Shown here: positions 184 through 15,691 of the stretch, one piece after another
Layout: each line of letters begins with the position of its first letter
Numbering within the stretch: position 1 is the stretch's first letter
Source of the DNA: Paragordius varius
Taxonomy: Eukaryota; Animalia; Nematomorpha
Direction of reading: 5' to 3'
Assembly: GCA_964247055.1 (NCBI GenBank)
Contig: OZ176061.1
Location: 1 to 15,693, forward strand
DNA length: 15,693 bases
Position numbers and translations under genes: made by a program
Notes under the pieces: model-generated
The model's input: the letters and a program-made list of their open reading frames with translations, nothing else
Told to the model about the DNA's origin: nothing
The model's database searches: none

Positions 184-1062
184 CTAAATTAATTTCCTGT
201 ACAACATGGTTATTATGATTAACTTATAATAGTAGAAGTAAGCAATTCTAGCTGCAAAGACAAACCCCATAGCAAATACTAATTTTCTGTAGTTTAATAT
301 CTTAATTAACATAAATACTTTTATAAAAAACATTAATCTTATAGGAAAACCCATCATATTAATTATTAAAAATACAAATAATGTAAATACAAAGCTTTTT
401 ATTAATATGAATTTTATTACTCCTCTGATTTTTAAGCATAAAAAAATAAAAGTTAAAATCAACATAAAATAAAATAAACTAAATATAATATAAAATCCTT
501 TTCTCACAAAAACAGAAAATCTTATTCAAGAAGAAAAATACACAGAAGTCATAATTATTATACCAAAAACGGAATCCGAAAAAAAAGCCCCTAAAACTCC
601 AATAAAATTACTGGATTGGCACCCACACATAACTGGTATGTCTCATCAACAAAAAGAAGAGACTGGTGATTCTTTGCACCACAAAATATAAAGCAGGATT
701 GGCACCCATTTCTGAAAAGAAGAGACTGGTGCAAAGAATCACCAGTCTCTTCTTTTTGTTGATGAGACATACCAGTTATGTGTGGGTGCCAATCCTGCTT
801 TCACTATGAAAACTAGTGAAAGCAGGATTGGCACCCACACATAACTGGTATGTCTCATCAACAAAAAGAAGAGACTGGTGATTCTTTGCACCACAAAATA
901 TAAAACAACAGAAAATCAAGAATTCTTTTTGTTGATGAGACATAAAAAAGTAAATACTAACAAATTTAATACTAATCCTTGCCATAAAAATAAAAATCTT
1001 GAGCATCTCATTATTCATAAAAAAGTAACAAAATAAATTATAAATCTAAATAACATAAGAAT
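184..1062 (-). CDS. nad2: NADH dehydrogenase subunit 2 (292 aa; start ATT 1062 or ATG 1056)
   Basis: Table 5 translation is open through the repeat region and ends at TAG 184. Motifs include LWQGLVLNL, YFVVQSITS, KAGLAPTHNW and FQKWVP. Confidence 0.9.
613..944. repeat. nad2 compound inverted/direct repeat network
   Basis: Inverted repeat 727-806/814-893 (80-bp arms). Direct copy 613-692 = 825-904. Short copies at 690-708, 715-731 and 923-944. Confidence 0.93.
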
Positions 1063-1133
1063 TAATAAAGAGACAATTTAGAGTCTATTTATGAGGTATG
1101 AACCCATTAGCTTAACATTTAGCTTACTTTATA
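1063..1133 (-). tRNA. trnM: tRNA-Met (CAT)
   Basis: Typical TAAAGTAAGCTAA...AAGCTAATGGGTTCATACCTCAT core on the minus strand. Confidence 0.9.
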
Positions 1134-1134
1134 C

Positions 1135-1188
1135 ATTAATTTTTTTTAGAAATTTGAATTCTATAAAAGCAGAATCTGCTAATTAATA
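1135..1188 (+). tRNA. trnQ: tRNA-Gln (TTG), D-armless
   Basis: Acceptor ATTAATT/AATTAAT, anticodon arm TAGAA-ATTTGAA-TTCTA, T-arm AGCAG/CTGCT, and a T5 loop in place of the D-arm. Confidence 0.75.
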
Positions 1189-1211
1189 TCTTCCATCATA
1201 CAGTTAAACAG

Positions 1212-1271
1212 AGTTAGCAATAACAAAAACTGTAAATTTTTACATTCTGATATCAATAATCAGTCTAACTA
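1212..1271 (+). tRNA. trnY: tRNA-Tyr (GTA), D-armless
   Basis: Acceptor AGTTAG/CTAACT, anticodon arm AAAAA-CTGTAAA-TTTTT, T-arm CTGAT/ATCAG. Confidence 0.75.
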
Positions 1272-1288
1272 CGTAGCCACCTATTTGT

Positions 1289-1351
1289 GACAGCTTATTA
1301 TTAAAAATATTTTGAATTTGTAATTCAAAGAAAGCATTTAGCTATCTGTCT
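1289..1351 (+). tRNA. trnT: tRNA-Thr (TGT)
   Basis: Anticodon arm TTGAA-TTTGTAA-TTCAA, acceptor GACAG/CTGTC. It sits in the usual T-P-nad6-cob block. Confidence 0.8.
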
Positions 1352-1357
1352 CTTCTT

Positions 1358-1425
1358 TTCAGAAATCTTTTTTTTTAAGTATTATTAACCCCCAAAGTTA
1401 GTGTTTTAAGTTAAACTATATCTGA
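1358..1425 (-). tRNA. trnP: tRNA-Pro (TGG)
   Basis: Minus strand CAGATATAGTTT...AAAACACTAAC-TTTGGGG-GTTAA. Confidence 0.85.
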
Positions 1426-1429
1426 TTAT

Positions 1430-2071
1430 ATGATTAAGTTATACCCAGAAAAAAAGAAAGTAGTGTATTCTCTGAATAGCAGTTTACTAATAAACTTAAA
1501 AATAGACTTAACACCACCAATAACACTCCTATATTTATCACTTTTTGTGTTCTTGTTATTTTTATTAATAAAAATAACAAGAACACAAAAAGTGATAAAT
1601 ATAGGAGTGTTATTGGTGGTGTTAAGTCTATTTTTAAGTTTATTAGTAAACTGCTATTCAGAGAATACACTACTTTCTTTTTTTCTGGGTATAACTTACT
1701 CAGGAGGAGTCTTAATTTTGATTATCTATATAATTGTTGTTGCACCAACTCCAATAATAAAGGAACATAAGCAAAACCAGACATCAGAAAAGAGTACATG
1801 ATTGATACTCAGAGGAGTGATATCACTCCTCTGAGTATCAATCATGTACTCTTTTCTGATACCCTTTCCTTCTTCTCTAATTGAGAGAAGAAGGAAAGGG
1901 TATCAGAAAAGAGTACATGATTGATACTCAGAGGAGTGATATCACTCCTCTGAGTATCAATCATGTACTCTTTTCTGATGTCTGGTTTTGCTTATGTTCC
2001 TTTATTATTGGAGTTGGTGCATAATTGTTGTTGCACCAACTCCAATATGATTAAAAATTAAAAAACTTTAA
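1430..2071 (+). CDS. nad6: NADH dehydrogenase subunit 6 (open from ATG 1430, 213 aa; homologous start probably ATA 1520, 183 aa)
   Basis: Table 5 frame is open to TAA 2069-2071. It carries the motif LGMTYSGGVLILIIYM and lies between trnP and cob. Confidence 0.8.
1435..1698. repeat. Perfect 264-bp palindrome (132-bp arms, no loop) at the nad6 5' end
   Basis: Centre between 1566 and 1567. Confidence 0.95.
1730..2047. repeat. nad6 nested inverted repeat
   Basis: Arms 1741-1878/1884-2021 (138 bp), each containing a 78-bp palindrome (1783-1860 and 1902-1979). A 27-bp direct repeat has 1730-1756 = 2021-2047. Confidence 0.95.
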
Positions 2072-3183
2072 TGATAAGTAATTTTGGTCCTTTTCGAAAA
2101 TCCTCAGAAGAAGTTAAATTTATTAATAATTTTATTGTTGACTTACCTACTCCTTCAAATTTAAACTATTTCTGAAACATAGGGTCTTTAACAGGTATTT
2201 TTTTATTAAATCAAATCATTTCAGGATTATTTTTATCTTTTCACTATTTTCCCTCGCCAGAACAGGCTTTCTCACTTGTAATATCTATTGAAGAATCTGT
2301 TTGAGAAGGATTTTTTATACGAACAATTCACTCATCAGGTGCTTCTTTTATATTTATATTTATGTATCTTCATATTTTTCGAGGAATATTTTATTCTTCG
2401 TATAAATTGAATCCTCTAACTTGAATATCAGGTGTAACTCTATATTTATTAACTATAGGATCAGCCTTTTTAGGTTATGTTCTTCCATGAGGACAAATAT
2501 CATACTGAGCAGCTACTGTAATTACAAATTTAATCTCAGCTTTACCTGTTGTAGGACATCCTGTAGTAATTTGGCTGTGGGGAGGGTTTAATGTGGGTTT
2601 ACCTACATTAAATCGGTTTTTTTCTTTTCACTTCCTTCTACCTTTAATTATTGCAGCTTTAGCGTTTTTTCATCTCTTACTATTACATAAAAACGGTAGA
2701 AACAACCCCTTAGGGCTACCTTCCAACACTTTTAAAATTTCTTTTCACTCGAAATTCTCGTGAAAAGACACTTTAGGTTTACTATTTCCTTTTTTTGCTT
2801 TAATATTACTAGTTATACTAACCCCTGACATTTTTACAGATGTAGTAAATTTTATTGAGGCTAATCCTTTATCAACACCTGCTCATATTGTGCCTGAATG
2901 GTATTTTTTATTCGCTTACGGGATTCTTCGAAGAATCCCCAATAAGTTAGGAGGAGTAATAGGATTAGTCTTAAGAGTTGTTATTCTCTATTTCCTACCC
3001 CTGCTAAAACAAAATAAAATTCCTTTATATTTCTCAAAATTAATAGTCTCTATTTTTTGTAGCGTGTTTATTATTTTAAGATATATAGGGTCACAACTTG
3101 TGGAACAACCATATATTATTATTAGACAAATTTGTAGAGTCATATATTTTTTAGTTTTATTTATTTTAATTTTATTTAATTAA
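2071..3183 (+). CDS. cob: Cytochrome b (370 aa)
   Basis: Motifs [35 protein letters not shown] and [24 protein letters not shown] to TAA. Confidence 0.97.
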
Positions 3184-3193
3184 ACCCGTCGTT

Positions 3194-3255
3194 AAGAGTA
3201 AATTTATCGCTACCTTGAAAGTAGAATCTGAAATCATTTTATTTCTTTACTCTTT
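3194..3255 (+). tRNA. trnS2: tRNA-Ser2 (TGA), D-armless
   Basis: Acceptor AAGAGTA/TACTCTT, anticodon arm CTAC-CTTGAAA-GTAG, T-arm GAAAT/ATTTC. It follows cob. Confidence 0.8.
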
Positions 3256-3268
3256 TTATTATACATAT

Positions 3269-3341
3269 ATCTAATTAGTATAACAATATGATTACATAGG
3301 AGTTTCAATCCTAAAATTTCCATTTTTAAAGAAATTAGATT
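3269..3341 (+). tRNA. trnE: tRNA-Glu (TTC)
   Basis: Acceptor ATCTAAT/ATTAGAT, anticodon arm TAGGA-GTTTCAA-TCCTA. Confidence 0.85.
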
Positions 3342-3343
3342 TA

Positions 3344-3413
3344 TTCATAATTAGAGATATAAAAACTCTGTATTTAAATTCTAAATTTAACGCATTAATA
3401 TGCTAAACTATGA
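3344..3413 (-). tRNA. trnL1: tRNA-Leu1 (TAG)
   Basis: Minus strand: acceptor TCATAGT/ATTATGA, anticodon arm TTAAA-TTTAGAA-TTTAA. Confidence 0.85.
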
Positions 3414-4500
3414 AAATAAAAGGGGCCCTTTCGTACTACCTTTTAAAATATAGATAAAAGATAGGAACCGATCTGGCTTTCACCGATCTGAACTCAAATC
3501 ATGGATTATTTTAAAAGTCGAACAGACTTTCTTACTTTTTTACTGCAAAAAGTAGATCTAATAATTCAACATCGAGGTCGCAATCACTGTAAAGTATGTG
3601 GCCTACTGTTACTGTATTACGCTGTTACCCCTGGGGTAACTTTTTCTTATTCTCACACAACTCAACTATGTGGATCAAATTGAAATTTAATTTTTTGCAT
3701 TGATTGCCCCAATCAACCTCACAAACTTACAAGGAGAGCTCCCAGGGTCTTGCCTTCTTTTTATATACACGTGTATTTTCACACGTATTACAATTTCAAT
3801 TTTTATAAATATTTTTCCATTAGTAGTTTTACCTTTCATCCTAATTTTTCAATCAAAAAATAAATGATTATGCTACCTTCGCACAGTCAAATTACCGCGG
3901 CTACTTATATTCAAATAACGTAGAGCAGGTTAAATAATTAAAATTCCTAATTAATAAGTTTTTGATAAACATTCTACAAATTGAAAAGAATAATATTTAC
4001 ATCTGTAATAATTATAACAAATATAAGTACATAATTATATTTCTACTAATTTTCACAAAATAGCTTTAATTCTATTTATTTTAACTTTGTTATAATTATT
4101 ACAGATGTAAATATTATTCTTTTCAATTTGTAGAATGTTTATCAACATTAATTTATAAAAAACTATTATTTTAAGAAATTTTATCCTTACTATACTTTTA
4201 AGTCTCTTAAACCTCATCTATAAATAAAATAAAGCTCACCCTTATTTTAAGCCTAAATAAATTTAAGCACCTCCCAAGGGAGATAATTTTTACAAAGCCA
4301 GTTATTTGTAACCGTAAAATTATCTTTTCTAAAAATTTTATTCAAAGTATTTTCAACTACATATCTTTTAAATTTTTATCTCTTTCACATTTTCTGGTTG
4401 TCAAATTTATTACTTACACTTATAAAATCGTGTTGCAACAGGAATATAATTATTTTCAGCATTTTCATAACTAGATTTCTCAAACTATCGATTTTAATTT
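3414..4500 (-). rRNA. rrnL: Large subunit (16S) rRNA; ends approximate
   Basis: Reverse complements of conserved 16S motifs: CCGATCTGAACTCAAATCATG (~3482), TTCAACATCGAGGTCGCAA (~3565) and TATGCTACCTTCGCACAGTCAAATTACCGCGGC (~3869). Confidence 0.9.
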
Positions 4501-4504
4501 CTAT

Positions 4505-5250
4505 GCTAGAAGTCCTTTTTCAAAAAGACTAACTTTGTTACGACTTATCCTTCTAAGGAGTGACGGGCGATATGTGTATAGTGAAGAGTAATTTTCAAAA
4601 ATTTTTTCTTAATATATTTTTAATTTACTTTCAAATCCTAAATTGTTTGTAAGTATTTAACTACAAACTAAATTATAAAATCAGTCCTATTGTGCCCCAC
4701 CAAACTATTATAACACTGTATATTGATTTGAATTGATTTAATAAAATAAATTAAATAATTTCTTTATTTTTTAACAACTATATACAAGAGTTTACATAAT
4801 ATAAGGTTTATAGCGTACTATCTATTTAATTTGGCTAAACCCTTTGATTTAATTCACTACTGCCAATTTTTTAAGTTTCCTTTTTATACTACTATAGTTA
4901 TATGTAAATTCAATAGTAGGGTATCTAATCCTAGTTTTTAATTAACTTTTTCTAAATCAAGGATTTAATATTTTTATTTATAATCAATTTTACCTTTATT
5001 ATAATAAGAAATCCTTTTTAATTTTTACTTAACAAGTATTTTCCCTTTTTGTATAACCGCTAATGCTGGCACAATTATTCTTAAGAGTATTTTACCTACA
5101 AACAGATACCCTCGTTTACGTTATGATGTCTTACTTCACACATGTTGAAAAACAGCTTTACCTGTTAGTATATTTACCTACTTGTGAGTGCTTATAAGAA
5201 TTTAGTAAAATATACTTCATAAATCAAAACTAAATTTCTCTTTATGATGA
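4505..5250 (-). rRNA. rrnS: Small subunit (12S) rRNA; 5' end inferred from the adjacent trnC
   Basis: Minus strand carries GTGCCAGC...GCGGTTATAC (~5052-5073), CATATCGCCCGTCACTCC (~4557-4574) and GATAAGTCGTAACAAAG plus the terminal helix (~4510-4548). The 5' boundary is uncertain. Confidence 0.85.
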
Positions 5251-5283
5251 AAAGGGTATGCCTGTGAAAACAGGCTAGTTTTG
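5226..5283 (+). tRNA. trnI: tRNA-Ile (GAT), mirror copy in the left arm
   Basis: Exact inverted copy of 5340-5397. Confidence 0.55.
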
Positions 5284-5309
5284 AGCTTGCAACTCTTCAC
5301 TATACCCTT
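5251..5309 (-). tRNA. trnC: tRNA-Cys (GCA), D-armless; copy in the left arm of the palindrome
   Basis: AGGGTAT-AGTG-AAGAG-TTGCAAG-CTCAA-AACTA-GCCTG-TTTTCA-CAGGC-ATACCCT. The anticodon stem has only 3 Watson-Crick pairs. Confidence 0.55.
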
Positions 5310-5313
5310 AATT

Positions 5314-5372
5314 AAGGGTATAGTGAAGAGTTGCAAGCTCAAAACTAGCCTGTTTTCACAGGCATACCCTTT
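5314..5372 (+). tRNA. trnC: tRNA-Cys (GCA), mirror copy in the right arm
   Basis: Exact inverted copy of 5251-5309. Confidence 0.45.
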
Positions 5373-5397
5373 TCATCATAAAGAGAAATTTAGTTTT
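5340..5397 (-). tRNA. trnI: tRNA-Ile (GAT), D-armless
   Basis: AAAACTA-AATTTC-TCTTT-ATGATGA-AAAGG-GTAT-GCCTG-TGAAAA-CAGGC-TAGTTTT. It lies downstream of the nad1 stop on the same strand. Confidence 0.75.
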
Positions 5398-5417
5398 GAT
5401 TTATGAAGTATATTTTA

Positions 5418-6341
5418 CTAAATTCTTATAAGCACTCACAAGTAGGTAAATATACTAACAGGTAAAGCTGTTTTTCAACATGTGTGAAGTAAGACATCAT
5501 AACGTAAACGAGGGTATCTACCACGAGCTCACAAAAAATACAAGCAGGGGAGTATGAAATATCATGATATTTCATACTCCCCTGCTTGTATTTTTTGTGA
5601 GCTCGTGGTAGATACCACGAGCTCACAAAAAATACAAGCAAAAAATATAATAGCTATGTATTCAGCTATGAATACAACTGCAAATACTCCTGAATATATT
5701 TCTACATTAAATCCGGATACTAACTCTGATTCTCCTTCTATTAAGTCATAAGGGGTTCGATTTGTCTCTGCTAAAGCACACATTAACAGTAAAGCTATTA
5801 GGGGTACTAGTACCCCTAATAGCTTTACTGTTAATGTGTGCTTTAGCAGAGACAAATCGAACCCCTTATGACTTAATAGAAGGAGAATCAGAGTGAATAT
5901 TAAAACTAACTCATAAGATACAGCCTGAGTTAAAGCTCGATATCCACCTAGCAAAGAATATTTAGAATTTGATAATCACCCAATAAACAAAATTATGTAA
6001 ACACCTAACCCTAACATCACCATTACAAATAATATCGTAAAATCCATTATTAGAGCGAAAGATGCTTGGGTTAATACAACTTCGAAAAGGACCAAATAAA
6101 GTCCTAGTGATAGGACTGGTGCAGCCATTCATAGACGCAGTAAAACTATTCTCAAAAAGAAGCTTCTTTTTGAGAATAGTTTTACTGCGTCTATGAATGG
6201 CTGCACCAGTCCTATCACTAGGACTTTATTTGGTCCTTTTCGAAGTTGTATTAACCCAAGCATCTTTCGCTCTAATAATGTAAAAAAGGATATACCCACC
6301 AAAAGAGATGCTTGGGTTAATACAACTTCGAAAAGAACCAA
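5418..6341 (-). CDS. nad1: NADH dehydrogenase subunit 1 (307 aa; start TTG 6341 abutting trnL2, or ATT 6344)
   Basis: Motifs [44 protein letters not shown] and WARGSYPRLRYD. TAG at 5418-5420 and the frame is continuous in table 5. Confidence 0.93.
5513..5640. repeat. nad1 palindrome 5513-5616 (104 bp) plus an overlapping hairpin 5583-5610/5613-5640
   Basis: Centre TCATGA at 5564/5565. Direct repeat 5519-5546 = 5613-5640. Confidence 0.93.
5723..5894. repeat. Perfect 172-bp palindrome in nad1
   Basis: Centre ACTAGT at 5808/5809. Confidence 0.95.
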
Positions 6342-6342
6342 A
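6045..6342. repeat. Perfect 236-bp palindrome in nad1 (6045-6280) plus a third partial copy at 6306-6342
   Basis: Centre AAGCTT at 6162/6163. 6060-6089 = 6306-6335. Confidence 0.95.
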
Positions 6343-6406
6343 ATTACATGATCAGTATACGATCTTATTAGAATCTTAACTTCTAAGCATAATCTGCCAA
6401 TGTAAT
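6342..6406 (-). tRNA. trnL2: tRNA-Leu2 (TAA)
   Basis: ATTACAT-TG-GCAGATTATGC-T-TAGAA-GTTAAGA-TTCTA...GATC/GATC-ATGTAAT. Confidence 0.88.
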
Positions 6407-6666
6407 TTTTATAGTGGGTCACTGTTAATACCCGCCCCCCACCCCATCCTTACGTCCTTCTCTCCCCTCGTCTTCCTCTCTCCTTTCGTCACACTCGTCC
6501 GTTCACTCGTAAGATATCTTTCTATTATATACTCTTTCCTTATTCTTGTTATCTAGTATGCTCAATATCCAGTATGTACAGAGGTGGTCCTCGTCAGGCC
6601 CGAAAAAATTTAGGTGATGGTATACTATGAATATGGTTCCCCAAAATTCATGCACCCTTATCAATA
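6407..6666. promoter_or_regulatory. Non-coding region (candidate control region part) with a C-run and a polypyrimidine tract
   Basis: No gene found between trnL2 and trnV. It has CCCGCCCCCCACCCC at 6431-6445 and a pyrimidine tract at about 6446-6500. Regulatory function is inferred. Confidence 0.55.
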
Positions 6667-6724
6667 ATTATGGTGTTCTATTTTCTTTATGTAACAAAGA
6701 TGTTTTTAATTAAACTAACCATAA
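6667..6724 (-). tRNA. trnV: tRNA-Val (TAC), T-armless
   Basis: TTATGGT-TA-GTTT-AATTAA-AAAC-A-TCTTT-GTTACAT-AAAGA-AAATAGAAC-ACCATAA. Confidence 0.85.
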
Positions 6725-7448
6725 ATAAATACAGATTTTTTTTATTCTATATTATTTATGTTAAAATCTTGTCCGTCGGACAAGATTTTAACATAAATAA
6801 ATACAGATTTTTTTTATTCTATATTATTTATGTTAAAATCTTGTCCGACGGACAAGATTTTAACATAAATAAATACAGATTTTTTTTATTCTATATTATT
6901 TATGTTAAAATCTTGTCCGTCGGACAAGATTTTAACATAAATAAATACAGATTTTTTTTATTCTATATTATTTATGTTAAAATCTTGTCCGACGGACAAG
7001 ATTTTAACATAAATAAATACAGATTTTTTTTATTCTATATTATTTATGTTAAAATCTTGTCCGTCGGACAAGATTTTAACATAAATAAATACAGATTTTT
7101 TTTATTCTATATTATTTATGTTAAAATCTTGTCCGTCGGACAAGATTTTAACATAAATAAATACAGATTTTTTTTATTCTATATTATTTATGTTAAAATC
7201 TTGTCCGTCGGACAAGATTTTAACATAAATAAATACAGATTTTTTTTATTCTATATTATTTATGTTAAAATCTTGTCCGTCGGACAAGATTTTAACATAA
7301 ATAAATACAGATTTTTTTTATTCTATATTATTTATGTTAAAATCTTGTCCGTCGGACAAGATTTTAACATAAATAAATACAGATTTTTTTTATTCTATAT
7401 TATTTATGTTAAAATCTTGTCCGACGGACAAGATTTTAACATAAATAA
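6720..7448. repeat. Tandem array of 10 x 72-bp units (plus a partial unit), each with a 24-bp-arm hairpin
   Basis: The unit repeats exactly every 72 bp from 6721 to 7440. The only variable base is the hairpin centre (T,A,T,A,T,T,T,T,T,A). Confidence 0.97.
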
Positions 7449-7449
7449 T

Positions 7450-8982
<1,533 letters not shown>

Positions 8983-9006
8983 AACATTAACATCTTTTCC
9001 TAAAGA

Positions 9007-9693
9007 ATTAACCCATGACGTTCAATCTTTCTTCAAGATATATTATCTTCTAGCTCAGAGTATTTGTATCTGCTTCATGAATTCGCTATAGTTTTTATCT
9101 CCGGTATTACTGTAATAGTGTTTTTTATATTTGGGTTTATTTTAATATCTAAATTCTTTTCTTTAAAATCAGCGCATATCAACATAGTAGAATTTTTATG
9201 AACATCTCTTCCTGTACTAGTTCTTCTAGTAATGGCTCTTCCTACCGTGAAAATTTTATATTCTAATGAAGACTCTCATTGACCAGATCTAACTGTTAAA
9301 GTCATAGGTGCTCAATGATACTGAAACTACGAATACTCTGATTTTCTTGACCTAAATTTTGATTCATATATGAGTCAAAATTTAGGTCAAGAAAATCAGA
9401 GTATTCGACTCATGGATACAGATAACCATCTAATCTTACCCTTTAAGGTAATAACTCGTTTACTAATCTCATCAAATGACGTTATTCATTCTTTTGCTTT
9501 ACCTCAATTTTCAATCAAATCTGATGCTATCCCAGGTCGTATTAATCAATGCTTTTTACTTCCTAAAAAACCACTTACAACTTATGGTCAATGCTCAGAA
9601 ATCTGCGGAGTTAACCACTCTTTTATACCAATTACTTTAGATTGTATCTCAACCAATAATTTTATCTCTTGAATTAATAGAAAAATTAATTAA
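9007..9693 (+). CDS. cox2: Cytochrome c oxidase subunit 2 (228 aa, ATT start)
   Basis: FLQD, GAQWYWNYEYSD, DVIHSF, DAIPGR and the CuA motif GQCSEICGVNHSF. Confidence 0.96.
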
Positions 9694-9696
9694 ATA

Positions 9697-9758
9697 TTTC
9701 TTAGTAGCTTAAACTAAAGCCTTAACCTCTTAAGTTAAAGATCTAATAGCTAAGAAAC
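9697..9758 (+). tRNA. trnK: tRNA-Lys (CTT)
   Basis: Acceptor TTTCTTA/TAAGAAA, anticodon arm TTAAC-CTCTTAA-GTTAA. The T-arm is reduced. Confidence 0.88.
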
Positions 9759-9775
9759 ATAAAAAGACACCACAT

Positions 9776-9833
9776 CACAAAATAATTTACAGTATGTCAA
9801 ACTGTGAAAACAAATTATAATTTGTTTTTGTGT
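9776..9833 (+). tRNA. trnD: tRNA-Asp (GTC), D-armless
   Basis: Acceptor CACAAAA/TTTTGTG, anticodon arm ACAGT-ATGTCAA-ACTGT, T-arm ACAAAT/ATTTGT. Confidence 0.8.
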
Positions 9834-9950
9834 ATACCCCACTTTTACCCTTCTCTCCCCTCGTCTTCCTTGCTAATTATTTTTTTCTTGTTAATAATAG
9901 CATTTTCTTTATATTTATCTTTCTTACCTGTTAACAACCACACAAATTAA
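9834..9950 (+). CDS. atp8: ATP synthase subunit 8 (38 aa)
   Basis: MPHFYP start resembling MPQ, a hydrophobic core, and position between trnD and atp6. ATA to TAA. Confidence 0.75.
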   Translation: MPHFYPSLPSSSLLIIFFLLIIAFSLYLSFLPVNNHTN

Positions 9951-9953
9951 CAT

Positions 9954-10634
9954 ATGATAATAAACCTCTTTTCTAGTTTTGATAGTTACAGTTTCAATAG
10001 CTATATGTATTTTTTCTTGTATTTTGTGATATCTTCATGGTGAATCATTATATCACAAAATACAAGAAAAAATACATATAGCTATTGAAACTGTAACTCA
10101 ACCTACTTTAAAGCTTTTTACAGAGTTGCTGGCCCATCTAGATGGGCCAGCAACTCTGTAAAAAGCTTTAAAGTAGGTTGAGTTACAGTTTCAATAGCTA
10201 TATGTATTTTTTCTTGTATTTTGTGATATAATGTTTTAGGGTTGTTTCCCTATATTTTTCCTGTTACAGCCATATTTTCTATTATTTTTCCTATGAGTTT
10301 AATATTATTTTTTATTAGATTTTTCTTTATTATTAAAAACTTCTCACTATACAAACTTATCCCCTCAGGTAGACCTGTTATGTTAAGACCTTTTCTTTTC
10401 ATAATTGAACTAGTGTCTTTAATAATCCGCCCGCTAACTCTGTCATTACGATTGTCAGCCAACATCACCAGCGGTCACATCCTCATTCATCTTGTGTCTT
10501 CTTCTATAGTAGGGGGATTTTTAATGTCTTTTACACCTTTTTTTATATTAAATATCCTCGAAATGAGAGTAGCTCTTATCCAATCTTATGTGTTTATGTC
10601 ATTAATTTCGCTGTACATTAGAGACTCATCTTAG
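9954..10634 (+). CDS. atp6: ATP synthase subunit 6 (226 aa)
   Basis: MMMNLFSSFD, NVLGLFPYIF, IRPLTLSLRLSANITSGH, ALIQSYVF. The frame is open through the repeats. Confidence 0.95.
9984..10233. repeat. atp6 compound repeat: 188-bp palindrome 10046-10233 plus inverted repeat 9984-10032/10050-10098
   Basis: Centre TCTAGA at 10139/10140. Direct repeat 9984-10032 = 10181-10229. Confidence 0.95.
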
Positions 10635-10635
10635 T

Positions 10636-11421
10636 ATGATAACTAACCCTTTTTATCTGGTTTCACCGTCCTCTTGGCCTTTATTTGTAGCAATAAGAGT
10701 TGCAGCTTTAGCTGCAACTCTTATTGCTACCATGTGAAAAACCTCTTGGCCTTTATTTGTAGCAATAAGAGTTGCAGCTTTAGCTGCAACTCTTATTTGC
10801 TGGGCAGTAGATCTTTCACGAGAAAACAATTCTACAGGTCTAATATCTTTAAATTTAAAATCTTGTATAAAATTTAGTTTTATGTTGTTTATTTTATCAG
10901 AAATTATATTCTTTATATCTTTTTTTTGAAGTTACTTTCATTTTAGATTAAGCCCCGATCCTGAAATTGGATCTTCTTGACCTCCTATAGGAGTAATCCC
11001 TATTCCATTTTTTGAAGTACCTCTTTTGAATACTCTGATTTTATTATCTAGAGGTGCTTTGATTACTTGGGCTCATCATTCAATATTCTCCAGAAAAAAT
11101 GCTATTTCTATCTCTCTTTTAACTTTATTTACTGTAATTTTAGGAGTATACTTTGCTTTATTGCAAATGGAAGAATATACCTCTTCTTTATTCAGTGTAA
11201 ACGATAGTTGTTTCGGTAGAGTATTTTTCACCACTACTGGTTTTCATGGTACTCATATTATCATTGGGTCATTAATACTTCTTGTTTCTCTGCCCTCATT
11301 TTTAATTTCAGGTGATTCTACTATCTCTATTACTTTTTTTGAGCTATCTGCCTGATACTGACATTTTGTCGATGTAGTATGACTATTTTTATTCTTAATT
11401 TTCTACTGATGGGGTGGGTAA
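10636..11421 (+). CDS. cox3: Cytochrome c oxidase subunit 3 (261 aa)
   Basis: SWPL, DLSRE, LSEIMFFMSFFWSYFH, WPPMG, LNTLILLSSG, TTGFHGTH, WYWHFVDVVW. Confidence 0.95.
10670..10797. repeat. cox3 56-bp direct repeat at a 72-bp offset, each copy carrying a hairpin
   Basis: 10670-10725 = 10742-10797. Hairpins at 10687-10730 and 10764-10797. Confidence 0.95.
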
Positions 11422-11446
11422 TTGATTGATTGTTTTAATATCTGCG

Positions 11447-11506
11447 GCTATTTTAGTATAAAAAGTACATTTAATTTCCAATTAAAAAGTAGAAATAAAA
11501 ATAGCA
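11447..11506 (+). tRNA. trnG: tRNA-Gly (TCC), no evident T-arm
   Basis: Acceptor GCTATTT/AAATAGC, anticodon arm TTTAA-TTTCCAA-TTAAA. Confidence 0.85.
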
Positions 11507-11851
11507 ATACTTACATGTCTTATTGCTATTTTTATTTCTACTTTTTTAAGAGCCACTATTGCTTTAGCCTATCAAATATTTAAGAGAAAAGGGAGAGCGT
11601 GAAAGACCTACTCTGTCAATTCCGCATTCGAATGCGGAATTGACAGAGTAGGTCTTTCACGCTCTCCCTTTTCTCTTAAATATTTGATAGTAACTATTAT
11701 ATTTATTATCTTTGATTTAGAGGTTAGTCTTTTTGTTATATCGCCTGTAATCTCATCTTCAAAAGAAAGTATTTTTATTTTCATTATCATCAACATCATT
11801 ACTCTAGGGTTTATGTATGAACTATATTATAATAAGTTTACATGAGTATAG
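11507..11851 (+). CDS. nad3: NADH dehydrogenase subunit 3 (114 aa)
   Basis: AFECGID, SPFSLKYL, FIIFDLEV. ATA to TAG. Confidence 0.93.
11569..11690. repeat. Perfect 122-bp palindrome in nad3
   Basis: Centre TTC|GAA at 11629/11630. Confidence 0.96.
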
Positions 11852-11866
11852 TTAGTCTTTTTCATC

Positions 11867-11930
11867 ATTTAGGGTTTATTATATAAAAATTTGCAATTTT
11901 TATTGGTAGAATATTAATATTTGCTAAATC
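11867..11930 (+). tRNA. trnA: tRNA-Ala (TGC), probably D-armless
   Basis: Anticodon arm AAAAA-TTTGCAA-TTTTT, acceptor ATTTAG/CTAAAT. First gene of the A-R-N-S1 cluster. Confidence 0.75.
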
Positions 11931-11935
11931 CATAT

Positions 11936-11993
11936 TTTACAACATTAACCTGATTTCGACTCAGGTGTCATCTTTAACCTTAGATTTGTAAAT
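11936..11993 (+). tRNA. trnR: tRNA-Arg (TCG), D-armless
   Basis: Acceptor TTTACAA/TTGTAAA, anticodon arm CCTGA-TTTCGAC-TCAGG. Confidence 0.82.
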
Positions 11994-11995
11994 AT

Positions 11996-12059
11996 TTTAA
12001 GTAATTTATATTAGAATACTTAACTGTTACTTAAGAAGAGAGTATTATCCTCCTTAAAA
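11996..12059 (+). tRNA. trnN: tRNA-Asn (GTT)
   Basis: Anticodon arm CTTAA-CTGTTAC-TTAAG, acceptor TTTAAG/CTTAAA. Confidence 0.8.
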
Positions 12060-12073
12060 GGTTGTTTTAAGAC

Positions 12074-12132
12074 AGAGCAGTGTATTTGCTTACTGCTAAT
12101 TAGCTTCAAAGATTTACAATCTTGCTGCTCTA
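12074..12132 (+). tRNA. trnS1: tRNA-Ser1 (GCT), D-armless
   Basis: Acceptor AGAGCAG/CTGCTCT, loop CTGCTAA, T-arm AAGAT/ATCTT. Confidence 0.82.
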
Positions 12133-12268
12133 TAAGTCTTTTCGTCTTAACCACTCAACTAGCTAGTTGAGTGGTTAAGACGAAAAGACTTATTATCTGC
12201 TCTATAAGTCTTTTCGTCTTAACCACTCAACTAGCTAGTTGAGTGGTTAAGACGAAAAGACTTATTAT
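12125..12268. repeat. 72-bp tandem duplication at the trnS1/nad4L junction, each copy with a 62-bp palindrome
   Basis: 12125-12196 = 12197-12268. Palindromes at 12132-12193 and 12204-12265. Confidence 0.95.
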
Positions 12269-12461
12269 TATTATTATTCAAATAGAAATCATATCTTTGC
12301 TTAGTTTGATTATCTTATCTGATTTTTATTTCTCACAAGAAGCATCTATTATTCTCTTAACTTTTTCTCTTTTGGTTCTTGTTATTGAATCGAGTACTGC
12401 TATTACTTATATATACATATCTTTTCGATTAAATAGTCTTACAAATATAAAATTATTTTAA
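12132..12461 (+). CDS. nad4L: NADH dehydrogenase subunit 4L (109 aa from ATA 12132, or 85 aa from ATA 12204)
   Basis: Hydrophobic ORF with IQMEIMSL and VLVIESSTAI, upstream of nad4. The 5' end is tandemly duplicated. Confidence 0.8.
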
Positions 12462-12470
12462 TTTATCACT

Positions 12471-13820
12471 ATGATAACTATTATAAAGAATGCCGCTGCT
12501 GTTATTTTTATTAAGCCTGAACCTCAAGCTCAAATTATCATCATATGTCTTAGATGAATAGTTTTAATATACCCTTTTTCAAGAAAATGGTTATTTTTTG
12601 ATAGCTCATCTATTGAGATTTCTAATCTTTTCAATAGAAATATTATATCCATTACTATAGTATTACTATTTTTATGAGTATCTCTAATAGTGACGCTATT
12701 AATCATAACCAGTATTAGTGAGACATTTAAACCTCTAATTAGAGGTTTAAATGTCTCACTAATACTGGTTATGATTAATAGCGTCACTATTAGAGATACT
12801 TTGGGGTTTTTTATTATGTTTGAGTTTTCTCTGTTACCCATCATGATGATAATTTGAGCTTGAGGTTCAGGCTTAATAAAAATAACAGCAGCGGCATTCT
12901 TGCTAATCTATACTAGATTAGCAAGAATGCCGCTGCTGTTATTTTTATTAAGCCTGAACCTCAAGCTCAAATTATCATCATGATGAGGAGTATCCATCAT
13001 GATGATAATTTGAGCTTGAGGTTCAGGCTTAATAAAAATAACAGCAGCGGCATTCTTTATTAAGCTGCCTATTTATATCTTTCACTCATGGTTACCTAAA
13101 GCACATGTAGAAGCTTCTACATGTGGGTCTATGCTGCTAGCAGGTAGACTATTAAAGCTAGGGTCATTTGGCCTCTTTAAGAGTCTACCTGCTAGCAGCA
13201 TAGACCCACATGTAGAAGCTTCTACATGTGGGTCTATGCTGCTAGCAGGTAGACTAATTTCTTCTTTTATCATAGTCTTACTAAGTGATGGAAAAATAAT
13301 AATTGCTTTTTCAAGAGTAACACACATAACATTAATAGCGTTAGCTTTTTTTGGGGTTTCTACCTCCGGGTTTTACTCCTTATTGTACGTTAGTTTATCT
13401 CACGGATTTACAAGTTCTTGTATATTTTTTATATTTTTTTTAATCTACAACAAATTGTTAACGCGTAACCTTATATTAATTAAATCATCTAATAAGTATA
13501 TAACCTCGTTATTATTTTATTATGTGTACTTTATCATTTTAATATTTAACGCAGGGTGCCCGCCTTCTTTAAATGTAGCAGGTGAAATTATAACTTTTTG
13601 AGCTGTGATAAATGTTTCAAACTATTGAAGTTGATTTTTAATTGTTGGATCTATATGCTCATTATTAATAGGTTTACTTTTATTCATTAACACTATAAAT
13701 ATTACAAATCACTCCTTAGGTTCTCAGAATTTCTCACAAACTTTCATATCAACAAACTTTATTCTATTTGTTTTTTTTATAGCCCATTTACTCCCTTGAT
13801 TGTTTCTAAACTGAATTTAA
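12471..13820 (+). CDS. nad4: NADH dehydrogenase subunit 4 (449 aa)
   Basis: FFIMFEFSLLP, HSWLPKAHVEA, SLSHGFTSS, NAGCPPSLN. Continuous in table 5, ATG to TAA. Confidence 0.95.
12677..12800. repeat. Perfect 124-bp palindrome in nad4
   Basis: Centre TAA|TTA at 12738/12739. Confidence 0.95.
12839..13057. repeat. nad4 double inverted repeat (12839-12910/12914-12985 and 12923-12985/12995-13057) with a further copy at 12486-12544
   Basis: Direct repeat 12839-12901 = 12995-13057. 12486-12544 = 12923-12981. Confidence 0.94.
13102..13256. repeat. nad4 compound repeat (inverted repeat 13102-13150/13182-13230; palindrome 13182-13255)
   Basis: Direct repeat 13102-13151 = 13207-13256. Confidence 0.95.
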
Positions 13821-13838
13821 CCCGATTTATCCTACTAA

Positions 13839-13897
13839 GTGAAGTGAGCGTAAATTGTGATTTTACTAAATCTGATTATTATATTCAGAACTTCACA
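13839..13897 (+). tRNA. trnH: tRNA-His (GTG), D-armless
   Basis: Acceptor GTGAAGT/ACTTCAC, anticodon arm GTAAA-TTGTGAT-TTTAC, T-arm TCTGA/TCAGA. It lies between nad4 and nad5. Confidence 0.85.
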
Positions 13898-14041
13898 ATC
13901 CTAATTTGAATAAAGTCGGATAACTGATATATGATGGGTATAAATATCAAACATATTACTGTGAGTGTTGCACTCACAGTAATATGTTTGATATTTATAC
14001 CCATCATATATCAGTTATCCGACTTTATTCAAATTAGGATT
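13897..14041. repeat. 71-bp-arm hairpin at the nad5 5' end
   Basis: Arms 13897-13967/13971-14041 with a 3-nt loop. Confidence 0.95.
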
Positions 14042-15691
14042 TTCTCCTTTATAATAACTAACTTAAAGTTTGTTGATATATACATTAACTATGACCCTTT
14101 AAGATTTTCTTTTATATTAAATTTAATAGTAGTTTTTTTAATAATTATTCTTTACAGATTTTTTTACATAGAAAAATCTGACTTTAAACTAGGGTTTATG
14201 GGTGTAACTAGTGTTTTCTTAATTTCTATAGTAATTATAGTTCTGTCTTCTTCCCTACCAGTTATTTTACTCGCTTGAGACTCACTGGGCCTTTCCTCTT
14301 TTTTATTAGTTTTGTTTTACAATAATTACTATAGAGAAAATAAAAGACTGGTCACATTAGTTATAAACCGTTTAGGTGACGCTTGCCTTATCATCTCTTT
14401 TCCTTTAATTTTTTCAAAATATGACGCTAATATAAGTTTAATAAATTCATTAATATGTAATTTTACATCTGTGGACTCCTTAATTCTAGTATTACTAATC
14501 ACAGCTTCTTTTATAAAAGCAGCTCAACTACCATGAAGTGCATGGCTGCTAGCAGCCATGGCTGCTCCAACACCTATTTCTTCACTTGTTCACTCTAGCA
14601 CTTTGGTGTGTGCAGGAGTCATTCTTTTCACCAAAGTGCTAGAGTGAACAAGTGAAGAAATAGGTGTTGGAGCAGCCATGGCTGCTTTAGTTTACATTAG
14701 TTTTATAATATCATCTATCTCGTCTACAAAAAATTTTGATCTAAAAAAAATCATTGCTCTAAGTACCATAAACCAAATATCTTTCTTATTAATTATCACA
14801 ATAAGTGTAAACCAGTATTTTATAGTATTTCATATGATTAGCCATGCTGTTTTTAAAAGAAATACTTTTATAATAGCCGGTTGCTTATTTCATAACTCAA
14901 AAAGATCACAAGAATACCGTTTTAATTCATCTAATAGAATTAGTAATTATTCAGTATTCCTACAGAGAGCTTTTATATCTCTATACTCTCTATCAAGACT
15001 GCCGTGATCGATAGGTTTTTACTCAAAGGAGCAAACTTTGTCTTCATCTTTATGAAAGGAGACTGCTCCTTTCATCTCATTGATGCTATTCTTTTTCATT
15101 TTTTACTCTTTTTTCTACTCATATCTTATTATAGCATCAATGAGATGAAAGGAGCAGTCTCCTTTCATAAAGATGAAGACAAAGTTTGCTCCTTTGAGTA
15201 AAAACCTATCGATCACGGCAGTCTTGATAGGGGTTTTTAGAATTTCAGGAGCAAACTTTGTCTTCATCTTAATAAGTCCTTCTCTCCCCTCGTCTTCCTC
15301 TCTCCTTTCACTGTCTCTAATTTTAAGACCTTTTATCACCGGGAAGTATATCTACTTGAGACACTTTCAACCGTTTTCAAGGATAGTAAATACAAATTAC
15401 TATCCTTGAAAACGGTTGAAAGTGTCTCAAGTAGATATACTTCCCACCCTTCTAGGATTTTCATTATTATCTCTACTCTGTCTCAGAAAAAAGAGAGTAG
15501 AGATAATAATGAAAATCCTAGAAGGGTGGGAAGTATATCTACTTGAGACACTTTCAACCGTTTTCAAGGATAGTAATTTGTATTTACTATCCTTGAAAAC
15601 GGTTGAAAGTGTCTCAAGTAGATATACTTCCCACCCTTCTAGGATTTTCATTATTATCTCTACTCTCTTTTTTCTGAGACAATTATTTTAA
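13931..15691 (+). CDS. nad5: NADH dehydrogenase subunit 5 (586 aa from ATG 13931; in-frame ATC at 13898 also possible)
   Basis: [63 protein letters not shown]. Continuous to TAA 15691. Confidence 0.95.
14541..14686. repeat. nad5 inverted repeat 14551-14608/14629-14686 plus a 20-bp palindrome 14541-14560
   Basis: 58-bp arms with a 20-nt loop. Confidence 0.93.
14990..15270. repeat. nad5 inverted repeat 14990-15089/15131-15230 plus a 24-bp third copy at 15247-15270
   Basis: 100-bp arms with a 41-nt loop. 15027-15050 = 15247-15270. Confidence 0.93.
15341..15681. repeat. nad5 3' triple overlapping inverted repeats
   Basis: Arms 15341-15389/15397-15445 (49 bp), 15341-15479/15494-15632 (139 bp) and 15479-15576/15584-15681 (98 bp). 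Confidence 0.94.

Follow-up and report, generated by a model that had tools for sequence, protein, structure and literature searches.

Perfect coding palindromes in the mitochondrial genome of a gordioid hairworm

Coding palindromes in nematomorph mitogenomes were described by Mikhailov et al. 2019 (PMC6649704) and Nikolaeva et al. 2023 (PMC10380579). Repeats longer than 65 bp were confined to phases 1 and 2, and phase-3 repeats of this size were absent (PMC6649704). The preliminary description of the DNA analysed here had recognised the phenomenon as already published, in agreement with both papers, and had called the mechanism that builds and maintains the repeats unsettled, which is correct by the literature. 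Its rating of the novelty was too high.

The window, i.e. the whole stretch of 15,693 bp that was analysed, is a complete circular mitochondrial genome with the gordioid hairworm gene order. We consider it probable (roughly 0.8 for the explanation as a whole, with the origin of the repeats set out below) that it belongs to a gordioid horsehair worm without an earlier published mitogenome and bears the coding palindromes already described for the phylum. The phenomenon, known since 2019, is present here in an extreme form in a species outside the published mitogenomes. Beyond the published limits are a 416-bp palindrome across nad1, trnI, trnC and rrnS, a 98-nt phase-3 repeat in nad5, palindromes in nad3 and cox2, and a control region formed by a palindromic array of 72 bp x 10.

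Host, gene content and repeat inventory

The gene order is identical to that of Parachordodes (P. pustulosus), Gordionus and Gordius. In protein searches the best five matches of atp6 were all from Nematomorpha (5/5), and the top two matches of nad5 were Gordionus alpestris and Gordius sp. Together with the gene order, these matches bear out the assignment to Nematomorpha that had been inferred before. The atp6 and nad5 pieces share merely 47-59% identity with the nearest published proteins, and for this reason the host is taken to be absent from the six published mitogenomes.

All 13 protein genes are open under the invertebrate mitochondrial code, with lengths of 226 (atp6), 261 (cox3), 449 (nad4) and, depending on the start codon chosen, 586-597 amino acids (nad5); nad1 comprises 306 codons plus stop. 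The normal gene lengths claimed earlier hold in so far as the quoted values agree and are normal for hairworms, but nad4l, nad6 and nad4 exceed their annotated counterparts in Parachordodes pustulosus by 23-56 codons, the 23 additional codons of nad4l being about one repeat unit.

Repeats were defined as perfect inverted repeats of the hairpin type with arms of at least 15 nt and loops of at most 60 nt. The whole window holds 57 of them, with arms of 15-208 nt (34 with at least 30 nt, 17 with at least 60 nt, 6 with at least 100 nt). Merging yielded exactly 20 regions from 613 to 15681 with a total of 4,761 nt, of which 4,284 nt belong to arms; this agrees with the about 20 complexes, about 4 kb and arms of 20-208 bp given in the preliminary description. 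Outside the control region there are 38 repeats with a mean arm of 62 nt, 13 of them without a spacer. Thirty dinucleotide-preserving shuffles gave not a single arm of 15 nt or more (longest 14 nt), and the same search detected no long perfect coding palindromes in an ordinary control mitogenome (L001). The repeats are real and far above chance. The features are as follows.

138-182, no strand assigned: extra 45-nt copy of the nad5 3' unit, located beyond the circular junction in the interval from trnW to the nad2 stop codon
613-944, minus strand: nad2 complex with 613-681/727-795 (69 nt, phase 2), 727-806/814-893 (80 nt, phase 1) and two short repeats
613-692 and 825-904, minus strand: 80-nt direct repeat within the nad2 complex
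1435-1698, plus strand: nad6 palindrome 1, 132-nt arms, no spacer, phase 1
1741-2047, plus strand: nad6 palindrome 2, 138-nt arms, 5-nt loop, a 39-nt palindrome nested in each arm
1730-1756 and 2021-2047, plus strand: 27-nt direct repeats flanking nad6 palindrome 2
5104-5519, minus strand: largest palindrome, perfect, 416 bp, 208-nt arms, no spacer; left arm with the rrnS transcript's first 80 nt, 67 nt of spacer and trnC; right arm with trnI, a spacer and the end of nad1 (codons 274-306 and stop codon)
5513-5640, minus strand: nad1 palindromes 5513-5564/5565-5616 (52 nt, phase 2) and 5583-5610/5613-5640 (28 nt, phase 3)
5723-5894, minus strand: nad1 palindrome, 86-nt arms, no spacer, phase 1
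6045-6335, minus strand: nad1 N-terminal palindrome, 118-nt arms, no spacer, phase 1, residues 20-98 (the same region as in Figure 1 of PMC6649704), with an overlapping 30-nt repeat 6236-6265/6306-6335
6752-7451, no strand assigned: control-region array, 10 units of 72 bp, each with a 24+1+24 palindrome
9330-9407, plus strand: cox2 hairpin, 33-nt arms, 12-nt loop, phase 1
9984-10233, plus strand: atp6 complex, 49-nt arms (phase 1) overlapping a 94-nt-arm palindrome (phase 2) centred between codons 62 and 63
10687-10797, plus strand: cox3 chain of three short phase-3 repeats (21, 21, 16 nt), giving a duplicated 18-residue peptide near the N-terminus
11484-11690, plus strand: trnG/nad3 hairpin (26 nt) and nad3 palindrome 11569-11629/11630-11690 (61 nt, phase 2)
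12132-12265, plus strand: nad4l 5' complex, 62-nt arms, each a 31+31 palindrome, forming a direct repeat of 72 bp x 2 whose first copy may precede the true start codon
12677-13255, plus strand: nad4 palindromes of 62 nt (phase 3), 72 and 63 nt (phase 1), 49 and 37 nt (phase 3), with an additional copy at 12480-12547
13897-14041, plus strand: nad5 5' palindrome, 71-nt arms, phase 3
14551-14686, plus strand: nad5 core palindrome, 58-nt arms, 20-nt loop, phase 3
14990-15270, plus strand: nad5 palindrome, 100-nt arms, 41-nt loop, phase 1, and a 24-nt repeat
15341-15681, plus strand: nad5 3' complex, 139-nt (phase 1), 98-nt (phase 3) and 49-nt arms (phase 2)

Perfect arms take up 3,412 of 11,184 coding nucleotides (30.5%), with shares of 85% in nad6, 72% in nad1 and about 10% in cox2 and cox3, while cox1, cytb and atp8 have no base in an arm. 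Most complexes lie inside reading frames, as had been stated, with the exception of the control-region array and of 5104-5519, which extends across rrnS, trnC, trnI and nad1. Both arms are translated in frame, and the alignments of atp6 and nad5 as well as the nad1 motifs show conserved residues inside arms. The nad1 arms encode e.g. YPRLRYD..WK..LP and LLERK..RKGPN, the latter in one arm of the N-terminal palindrome; one arm of the palindrome at 5723-5894 encodes the conserved AETNR..D..EGESEL segment. In the nad5 core palindrome one arm encodes a universal motif (18 protein letters) and the other a hairworm-specific peptide. Phase 1 is the commonest among arms of at least 60 nt (8/16). Arms of 62-98 nt are found in four repeats of phase 3. 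The longest of these (98 nt) is inside the nad5 reading frame, and two others are at the 5' ends of genes, where translation may not include the outer arm.

Outside the arms complementarity falls to chance within the first bases, so that the edges are sharp. The absence of mismatches claimed earlier applies to the perfect cores, whereas three repeats have short imperfect extensions with a few mismatches distal to the core (e.g. 6032-6293 with 95% and 5717-5900 with 98%). The analysis of arm-edge complementarity revealed no decaying repeats; identity is binary.

It is unlikely that the repeats are functional RNA structures, i.e. mRNA hairpins selected because they adjust the speed of translation, the lifetime of the mRNA or the balance among respiratory complexes. 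The uneven load, with heavily affected complex I genes and a free cox1, would fit such a role, and the authors of the 2019 study left this possibility open (PMC6649704). However, perfect repeats also occur in the control region, in tRNA genes and at the rrnS/nad1 boundary, where a role in mRNA makes no sense. Sites have been gained and lost among species, and a published RNA-seq comparison found no stage-dependent difference in expression (PMC6649704). Stems of functional RNAs allow G-U pairs and mismatches, whereas the repeats described here are perfect at the DNA level and end sharply.

Comparison of the window with itself revealed no dispersed family of palindromes at unrelated loci; every repeat is local. 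The sole dispersed element is a polypyrimidine of 22-37 nt at 6451-6487, 9849-9870 and 15273-15309. A mobile palindromic element inserting into genes, like the Rickettsia palindromic elements, the GC clusters of yeast mitochondria or bypass elements, could explain why some genes exceed those of P. pustulosus by about one repeat unit, as does nad4l, and a short dispersed element does exist in the form of the polypyrimidine. This explanation is nevertheless very improbable: similar palindromes at unrelated loci are lacking, the arms are the host gene's own conserved coding sequence, and they show no decay.

Public sequencing runs

Public runs were examined as contigs of a de Bruijn graph (k=31), not as reads. 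Because such contigs cannot bridge a palindrome, no single molecule spanning both arms was seen. Contigs of runs X1, X3 and X4 stop at 5132/5133, 29 nt inside the arm starting at 5104, which is where a k=31 graph must end at a true repeat edge. Run X2 is RNA-like, with poly-A at 4511 and an rRNA depth far above that of mRNA. Its contig 4511-5183 crosses 5104 into the arm of the 416-bp palindrome, and contigs of this run inside arms, e.g. 1435-1547 in nad6 palindrome 1, show 0 differences. The X2 contigs contain no joint skipping a hairpin in the coding palindromes and no listed sequence difference in protein genes. Coverage falls over the hairpins in this run, with zero-depth bins over those of nad1. 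The mRNA hairpins may burden the mitoribosome, as had been suggested; what the RNA-like run shows is limited to the presence of arm sequence, the lack of such joints and differences, and the fall in coverage. In runs X3 and X4, position 1729 is joined to 2021 (1729->2021), which takes out nad6 palindrome 2 in frame; a form lacking this palindrome therefore exists, be it a nuclear copy, a library artefact or a mitochondrial variant.

A spacer-less perfect palindrome has the typical shape of an assembly or library artefact (fold-back chimeras, inversions from whole-genome amplification, collapsed repeats), and no contig of the public runs bridges a whole palindrome. Such an origin is extremely improbable all the same. 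No reading frame is interrupted over the about 3.4 kb of arms. Independent evidence anchors each junction of the 416-bp palindrome, namely the RNA-like contig over 5104 and a conserved nad1 motif over 5519/5520, and trnI and trnC are both in syntenic order only if both arms exist. Furthermore, the contig ends in three runs fit genuine repeat edges, homologous sites are found in independently assembled species, and the repeats of other hairworms were validated by nuclease enrichment and restriction experiments (PMC6649704).

Shared sites and origin of the repeats

The comparison of repeat positions with other nematomorphs, proposed in the preliminary description, was carried out with a palindrome-compatibility test that uses proteins only and recovers the actual arms of the window exactly. 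The atp6 site is common to four published hairworms, with compatible runs of 77-95 nt versus control maxima of 15-27 nt. Two nad5 sites, the core palindrome and the 139-nt-arm palindrome, are shared with G. alpestris and Gordius sp., both of which exhibit runs there, and no runs were detected at the nad5 sites in nine other animals. The nad5 5' palindrome and the palindrome with 100-nt arms have no counterpart in the nad5 proteins of these two hairworms.

Species differ from one another at 12-15 of 28 residues in the arms. A difference at one codon tends to be accompanied by one at its mirror codon (summed table [[31,13],[13,27]]), with p about 0.01 in two of three species pairs, the pairs being non-independent; a shift of the pairing by 1-3 codons abolishes this association. 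These data support a concerted evolution of the two arms, as far as can be judged from protein comparisons in three non-independent species pairs. The combination of arm homogenisation and purifying selection invoked earlier is a published hypothesis and is supported by the sharp edges, the shared but diverged sites and the co-varying mirror codons.

Alternatively, the arms might be perfect without ongoing homogenisation because each palindrome stems from a very recent single inverted duplication. In line with this, several palindromes lack a counterpart in the two published nad5 proteins or are in places marked as repeat-free in P. pustulosus, flipped loops show one-step inverted copying, and the joined form without nad6 palindrome 2 was found in two runs. 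We regard this as quite unlikely, because the palindromes of atp6 and two of those in nad5 are located at the same codons in species in which about half of the arm residues differ, and the arms are perfect here. The co-variation of mirror codons and a paired substitution documented within one species (PMC6649704) likewise contradict it. The lineage-specific palindromes (416 bp, nad5 5', 100-nt arms) may just be of recent origin, which leaves the shared sites as the only ones for which conversion is demonstrated.

According to the preferred explanation, the repeats would arise at the DNA level through inverted copying, the new strand folding back or switching template so that neighbouring sequence is copied as its reverse complement. 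Mismatches between the arms would be wiped out again and again, either by this process or by repair of the hairpin stem, and selection at the protein level would decide which palindromes persist. Usually one arm would hold a conserved motif and the other would lie in a tolerant loop, a terminus or an insertion. Several features of the DNA point to inverted copying: the spacer-less repeats, the sharp edges, the nad5 3' complex, which consists of two copies of a 187-nt unit differing solely by reverse-complemented loops, and the control-region units, which are identical apart from the base in the middle of the hairpin (in order T,A,T,A,T,T,T,T,T,A). Translation is not required, given that trnI, trnC, rrnS and the control region bear repeats as well. 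The evidence would fit template switching, hairpin-stem repair and recombination alike and does not pin down an enzyme or pathway. Given inverted copying and selection, the palindromes may best be regarded as self-perpetuating by-products of an unusual system for maintaining mtDNA and not as functional devices.

Comparison with known systems

The window resembles the published hairworms in phylum and gene order, in perfect hairpin repeats within intact genes, in conserved residues in both arms, and in an arm identity that is perfect or nothing. Overlapping A-A'-A complexes giving rise to direct repeats, common sites in atp6 and nad5, and the use of the same N-terminal region of nad1 are shared, too, as are, to judge from contigs, RNA coverage drop-outs over hairpins. 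In contrast to these species, the largest arm comprises 208 nt (published maximum 142 nt), and trnC and trnI, which are repeat-free in P. pustulosus, lie inside the largest palindrome. Repeats in nad3 and cox2 are likewise unlike the published ones, nad3 being repeat-free in P. pustulosus. The 98-nt repeat is of phase 3, as opposed to phases 1 and 2 only above 65 bp (PMC6649704), and the control region is a tandem array, whereas other species have no tandem repeats there (PMC10380579).

Perfect inverted repeats in nad1, nad2, nad5, nad6 and cox2 are also known from the gastrotrich Lepidodermella squamata and a few other invertebrates. These are far fewer and reach at most about 60 bp, and according to the authors they originated independently (PMC6649704). 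In nuclear inverted arms near-identity is kept by intramolecular conversion as well, but such arms extend over kilobases to megabases, comprise whole genes, have a spacer and depend on recombination-based repair, whereas the arms here measure 15-208 nt, often lack a spacer and lie within single mtDNA reading frames. The Rickettsia palindromic elements and, in the mitochondria of Magnusiomyces capitatus, the bypass elements also place palindromic sequence in protein-coding genes; they are dispersed inserted families, decaying or skipped in translation (PMC6649704).

Genome identity and gene content

The 15,693 bases represent a complete circular animal mitochondrial genome with an A+T content of 70%. 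As described before from the sequence alone, the reading frames stay open, and this applies to 13 of 13 protein genes under the invertebrate mitochondrial code. The tRNAs were placed by ARAGORN in mitochondrial mode; its default settings returned zero tRNAs for the window, and mitochondrial mode gave spurious extra calls within palindromes and control-region units, the latter being labeled tRNA-Val or tRNA-Asp, probably spuriously. No convincing ARAGORN call was obtained for trnV (expected between rrnL and rrnS, 4450-4511) and trnR (expected after trnA, 11925-11995), which are probably strongly reduced tRNAs. Since Rfam provided no rRNA match and only sub-threshold miRNA-like matches on the hairpins, the rRNA ends were placed from RNA-like contigs.

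Gene order of the window; (-) denotes the reverse strand
trnF, trnW(-), nad2(-), trnM(-), trnQ, trnY, trnT, trnP(-), nad6, cytb
trnS2, trnE, trnL1(-), rrnL(-), rrnS(-), trnC(-), trnI(-), nad1(-), trnL2(-), control region
cox1, cox2, trnK, trnD, atp8, atp6, cox3, trnG, nad3
trnA, trnN, trnS1, nad4l, nad4, trnH, nad5

This is the published gene order of Parachordodes pustulosus, Gordionus and Gordius. Protein searches were performed with TGA-free gene pieces, and work in the mitochondrial code was scripted. The top five matches of the atp6 piece were all from Nematomorpha, at an identity of just 53-59%, and an exhaustive search with the nad5 core piece had Gordionus alpestris (49%) and Gordius sp. 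(47%) as its top two matches. Because of the gene order and these low-identity best matches found only in Nematomorpha, sequence comparison points to a gordioid hairworm outside the set of published mitogenomes. The affiliation to Nematomorpha, previously derived from the palindromes, was thus correct.

The third-closest nad5 protein, P0123, is encoded by a metagenome-derived mitogenome (L001, 1-14959; ENA ERZ27264707). It was considered as a possible early-branching relative, but the genes of this mitogenome are arranged very differently and contain no coding palindromes, and it was retained solely as a negative control. The sole dispersed repeat of the window's genome is a short polypyrimidine element, a direct repeat common to the control-region flank (6451-6487), atp8 (9849-9870) and nad5 (15273-15309).

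Perfect palindromes in genes and non-coding DNA

Perfect hairpin-type inverted repeats with arms of at least 15 nt and loops of at most 60 nt were counted. The window contains 57 of them, with arms of at least 30 nt in 34, at least 60 nt in 17 and at least 100 nt in 6 cases. Once merged, they form exactly 20 regions within 613-15681; these span 4,761 nt, of which 4,284 nt are arms. The preliminary description had announced about 20 complexes, about 4 kb in total and arms of up to 208 bp; the census agrees with all three values, the 208-nt arms being located at 5104-5519. Thirty dinucleotide-preserving shuffles yielded zero arms of 15 nt (maximum 14), and long perfect coding palindromes were absent from L001 when subjected to the same repeat finder. 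Perfect arms hold 3,412 of the 11,184 coding bases (30.5%), and palindromes are present in nad3 and cox2, too, which extends what has been published for hairworms.

Arm share of the protein genes
nad6: 85%
nad1: 72%
nad5: 46%
nad3: 44%
nad4l: 37%
atp6: 35%
nad4: 34%
nad2: 30%
cox2: 10%
cox3: 10%
cox1, cytb, atp8: nil

Outside the control region, the spacer is absent in 13 of 38 repeats, and complementarity is no higher than expected by chance directly beyond the arm ends. In four published hairworms arm identity is likewise either perfect or absent, with a paired substitution within one species (Mikhailov et al. 2019, PMC6649704).

The largest palindrome (5104-5519, 416 bp) has no spacer. The right arm takes in trnI, a spacer and the end of nad1 (codons 274-306 and the stop codon). 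The left arm takes in trnC and, beyond 67 nt of spacer, the initial 80 nt of rrnS, whose transcript is abundant. As nad1 and rrnS stand in opposite arms, the 5' end of rrnS is antisense to a conserved motif of nad1. Over their 3'-terminal 34 nt, trnI and trnC are exactly reverse complementary and share one T-arm hairpin, and both tRNAs fold with the correct anticodons (GAU and GCA). Mirror-image DNA here encodes the 3' halves of two tRNAs, one end of an rRNA and a conserved protein motif, whereas trnC and trnI of P. pustulosus are repeat-free and adjoin rrnS and nad1.

Further features of the palindrome system
6720-7451: control-region array, 72 bp x 10 units, each with a 24+1+24 palindrome
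10636-10800: overlapping palindromes in cox3, exact duplicated peptide of 18 residues
12133-12265: overlapping palindromes in nad4l, exact duplicated peptide of 24 residues
12839-13255: overlapping palindromes in nad4, two pairs of exact duplicated peptides
138-182: additional copy (45 nt) of the palindrome unit from the nad5 3' end, across the origin, in the interval from trnW to the nad2 stop codon

The control-region units are identical save for the central base (T,A,T,A,T,T,T,T,T,A), a pattern suggestive of flipped hairpins. Control-region tandem repeats are reported to be absent in other hairworms (Nikolaeva et al. 2023, PMC10380579), in contrast to the 10-unit array of the window. Of the two 187-nt copies in the nad5 3' complex, the second departs from the first solely in having both loops reverse-complemented, a change that slippage cannot generate. 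With the copy at 138-182, inverted copies thus flank the nad5 end, trnF and trnW over the circular junction. The cox3 duplicate takes the place of the next helix at the same overall length, and nad4l is about one unit longer than in P. pustulosus.

Both arms of coding palindromes encode conserved residues in the four published hairworms (PMC6649704). The nad1 arms of the window encode LLERK..RKGPN, AETNR..EGESEL and YPRLRYD..WK..LP. One arm of the 58-nt repeat in nad5 encodes a universal motif of 18 residues; the peptide of its partner arm is common only to the two hairworm nad5 proteins and corresponds to an unrelated segment in other animals.

Repeat sites in atp6, nad1 and two in nad5 are known to be common between species (PMC6649704). 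We searched proteins by dynamic programming for the maximal length over which two segments could be reverse complementary under at least one choice of codons. Applied to the window's own proteins, this recovered the true arms of atp6 (94 and 49 nt) and nad5 (140, 102, 99, 70 and 58 nt). In atp6, four published hairworm proteins exhibited compatible runs of 77-95 nt with the same centre codon, twelve non-hairworm controls runs of just 15-27 nt. The nad5 proteins of G. alpestris and Gordius sp. have compatible runs at the core site and the C-terminal site, and nine other animals showed zero runs of at least 28 nt in nad5. The proposed comparison of repeat positions within the phylum revealed an atp6 site shared with four published species and two nad5 sites shared with two. 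Because this protein-only test found no counterparts in G. alpestris and Gordius sp. for the nad5 5' palindrome, the palindrome with 100-nt arms and the 98-nt C-terminal palindrome, these three appear to be lineage-specific gains.

The shared sites have diverged. Once aligned by codon, the atp6 palindromes of different species disagree at 12-15 of the 28 residues in each arm, and differences co-occur at mirror codons, i.e. codons opposite each other in the two arms (summed table [[31,13],[13,27]]; p about 0.01 in two of three species pairs). The association was gone once the pairing was shifted by 1-3 codons. The sharp arm edges, the common yet diverged sites and this co-variation support arm-to-arm homogenisation together with purifying selection, as suggested in the preliminary description.

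With regard to repeat phase, phase 1 is foremost among the long repeats, and the labels used here also assign phase 1 to the long C-terminal palindrome that G. alpestris shares in nad5. Phase 3 was never found above 65 bp in PMC6649704, whereas phase-3 repeats of the window have arms of 62, 62, 71 and 98 nt, the last one within the nad5 frame. At the nad4l and nad5 5' ends, the outer arm of the phase-3 repeats may lie upstream of the true start codon.

Sequencing runs and diverged contigs

Public sequencing runs (X1-X4) were available as de Bruijn contigs (k=31), not as reads, and no contig crosses any whole palindrome. X1 agrees with the window without listed differences, its contigs sitting between the palindromes. 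Contigs of X1, X3 and X4 stop 29 nt inside the arm at 5104, matching the behavior of a k=31 graph on reaching the edge of a true repeat. These contig ends in three runs contradict an assembly artefact, as do the open frames, the conserved motifs over the junctions and the homologous sites in other species. Published hairworm repeats were validated via nuclease enrichment and restriction (PMC6649704).

X2 behaves as RNA-derived: it retains adapter remnants, shows a poly-A tail ending the contig at 4511, and covers rrnL 25 to 135 times as deeply as cytb. Its contig 4511-5183 (673 nt, compared to 662 nt for rrnS in P. pustulosus) runs into the left arm of the 416-bp palindrome. X2 contigs inside the nad6 and nad1 arms show 0 differences, and the run has no joints within coding palindromes. 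Empty bins over the nad1 hairpins are consistent with the drop-out pattern of hairworm RNA-seq in PMC6649704, where editing was absent. An rrnL inverted repeat (3962-4145, 65-nt arms, 97%) is bypassed by two X2 joints, 3967->4144 and 3973->4163 (at a contig depth of about 11,700, next to one of about 90,000), which could reflect a reverse-transcriptase jump or genuine processing. Mirror-image junctions at 5169 and 5454 occur in X4 and X2; they have only the inner 143 of 208 nt of the arm in common and then diverge into other sequence with a translation unlike nad1.

X3 and X4 also hold sequence that differs from the window by about 4%. Its listed differences are mostly at third codon positions of cytb, but it also carries 1-nt deletions in cytb and rearrangement joints. 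At the joint 1729->2021, seen at the depth of the diverged sequence, 291 nt are skipped in frame and the second nad6 palindrome is lost. This could be a nuclear copy, a variant mtDNA or a library jump; the joint falls between 27-nt direct repeats (1730-1756 and 2021-2047), across which a jump would produce it, and such a jump was seen by PCR in G. alpestris nad6 (PMC6649704).

Contigs of X1 reach 1881, 5567, 5609 and 6297, points that coincide with palindrome centres or arm ends or lie close to them, and extend by 255 nt or more in sequence absent from the window. These may be junctions of nuclear mtDNA copies broken at hairpin tips, and nuclear copies would explain the diverged contigs, the joints and the loose ends. 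The most far-reaching reading, tentative at a probability of roughly 0.3, is that palindrome-making has gone furthest here of any described hairworm and is blind to gene type, having merged the nad1 3' end, both tRNA genes and the rrnS 5' end in a single 416-bp palindrome, and that the 4% diverged contigs, among them the form lacking one nad6 palindrome and the junctions at hairpin tips, look like nuclear mtDNA copies. If they are nuclear fossils, palindrome births and losses would become datable and hairpin tips would be revealed as sites of breakage.

Origin and comparison with known hairworms

The repeats are real and coding, they have sharp edges and co-varying arms, and they are common between species although their sequences have diverged; tRNA, rRNA and non-coding DNA contain them as well. 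Since these sequences are equally affected, the process seems to be purely DNA-level. An RNA-level function of the hairpins is not needed and fits poorly with repeats in non-coding, tRNA and rRNA sequence. A mobile-element origin is contradicted, no dispersed palindrome family being found.

The palindromes would originate by inverted copying of DNA, as indicated by the 13 of 38 spacerless repeats, the flipped loops of the nad5 3' copy and the control-region units differing at the hairpin centre. The same fold-back/template-switch process, or repair within the hairpin stem, would then remove new mismatches, and protein-level selection would set edges and survival; in the typical pair a conserved arm acts as donor and its partner lies where change is tolerated. 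Deletion would be no way out inside an essential gene, making the repeats self-perpetuating as argued in PMC6649704. There, the authors proposed template switching, or else conversion through repair, ascribed a parasitic character to the repeats and left the mechanism unsolved, in agreement with the preliminary description; the observations of the latter are confirmed, and its interpretation, essentially that of PMC6649704, is supported.

Few known compromises between the structure of DNA and the function of proteins are as strange as coding palindromes. The window brings no new principle; its chief value is that the mechanism can be studied here with ample resources. For this species, RNA data, a nuclear assembly and apparent nuclear mtDNA copies are available, making the DNA-level nature and the rate of palindrome birth and loss testable in one species, as well as nuclear-encoded replication, repair and RNA-helicase genes differing from other ecdysozoans.

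The phenomenon itself is already in print, and our literature searches on hairworm coding palindromes yielded nothing beyond PMC6649704 and PMC10380579. Four hairworms contain 110 perfect repeats of at least 15 bp (mean 43 bp, longest arm 142 bp; PMC6649704), and P. pustulosus has 55 hairpins across 29 regions (PMC10380579). The window stretches some published limits and, with about 30% of its coding bases in arms and a largest arm of 208 nt, is the most heavily loaded hairworm example so far.
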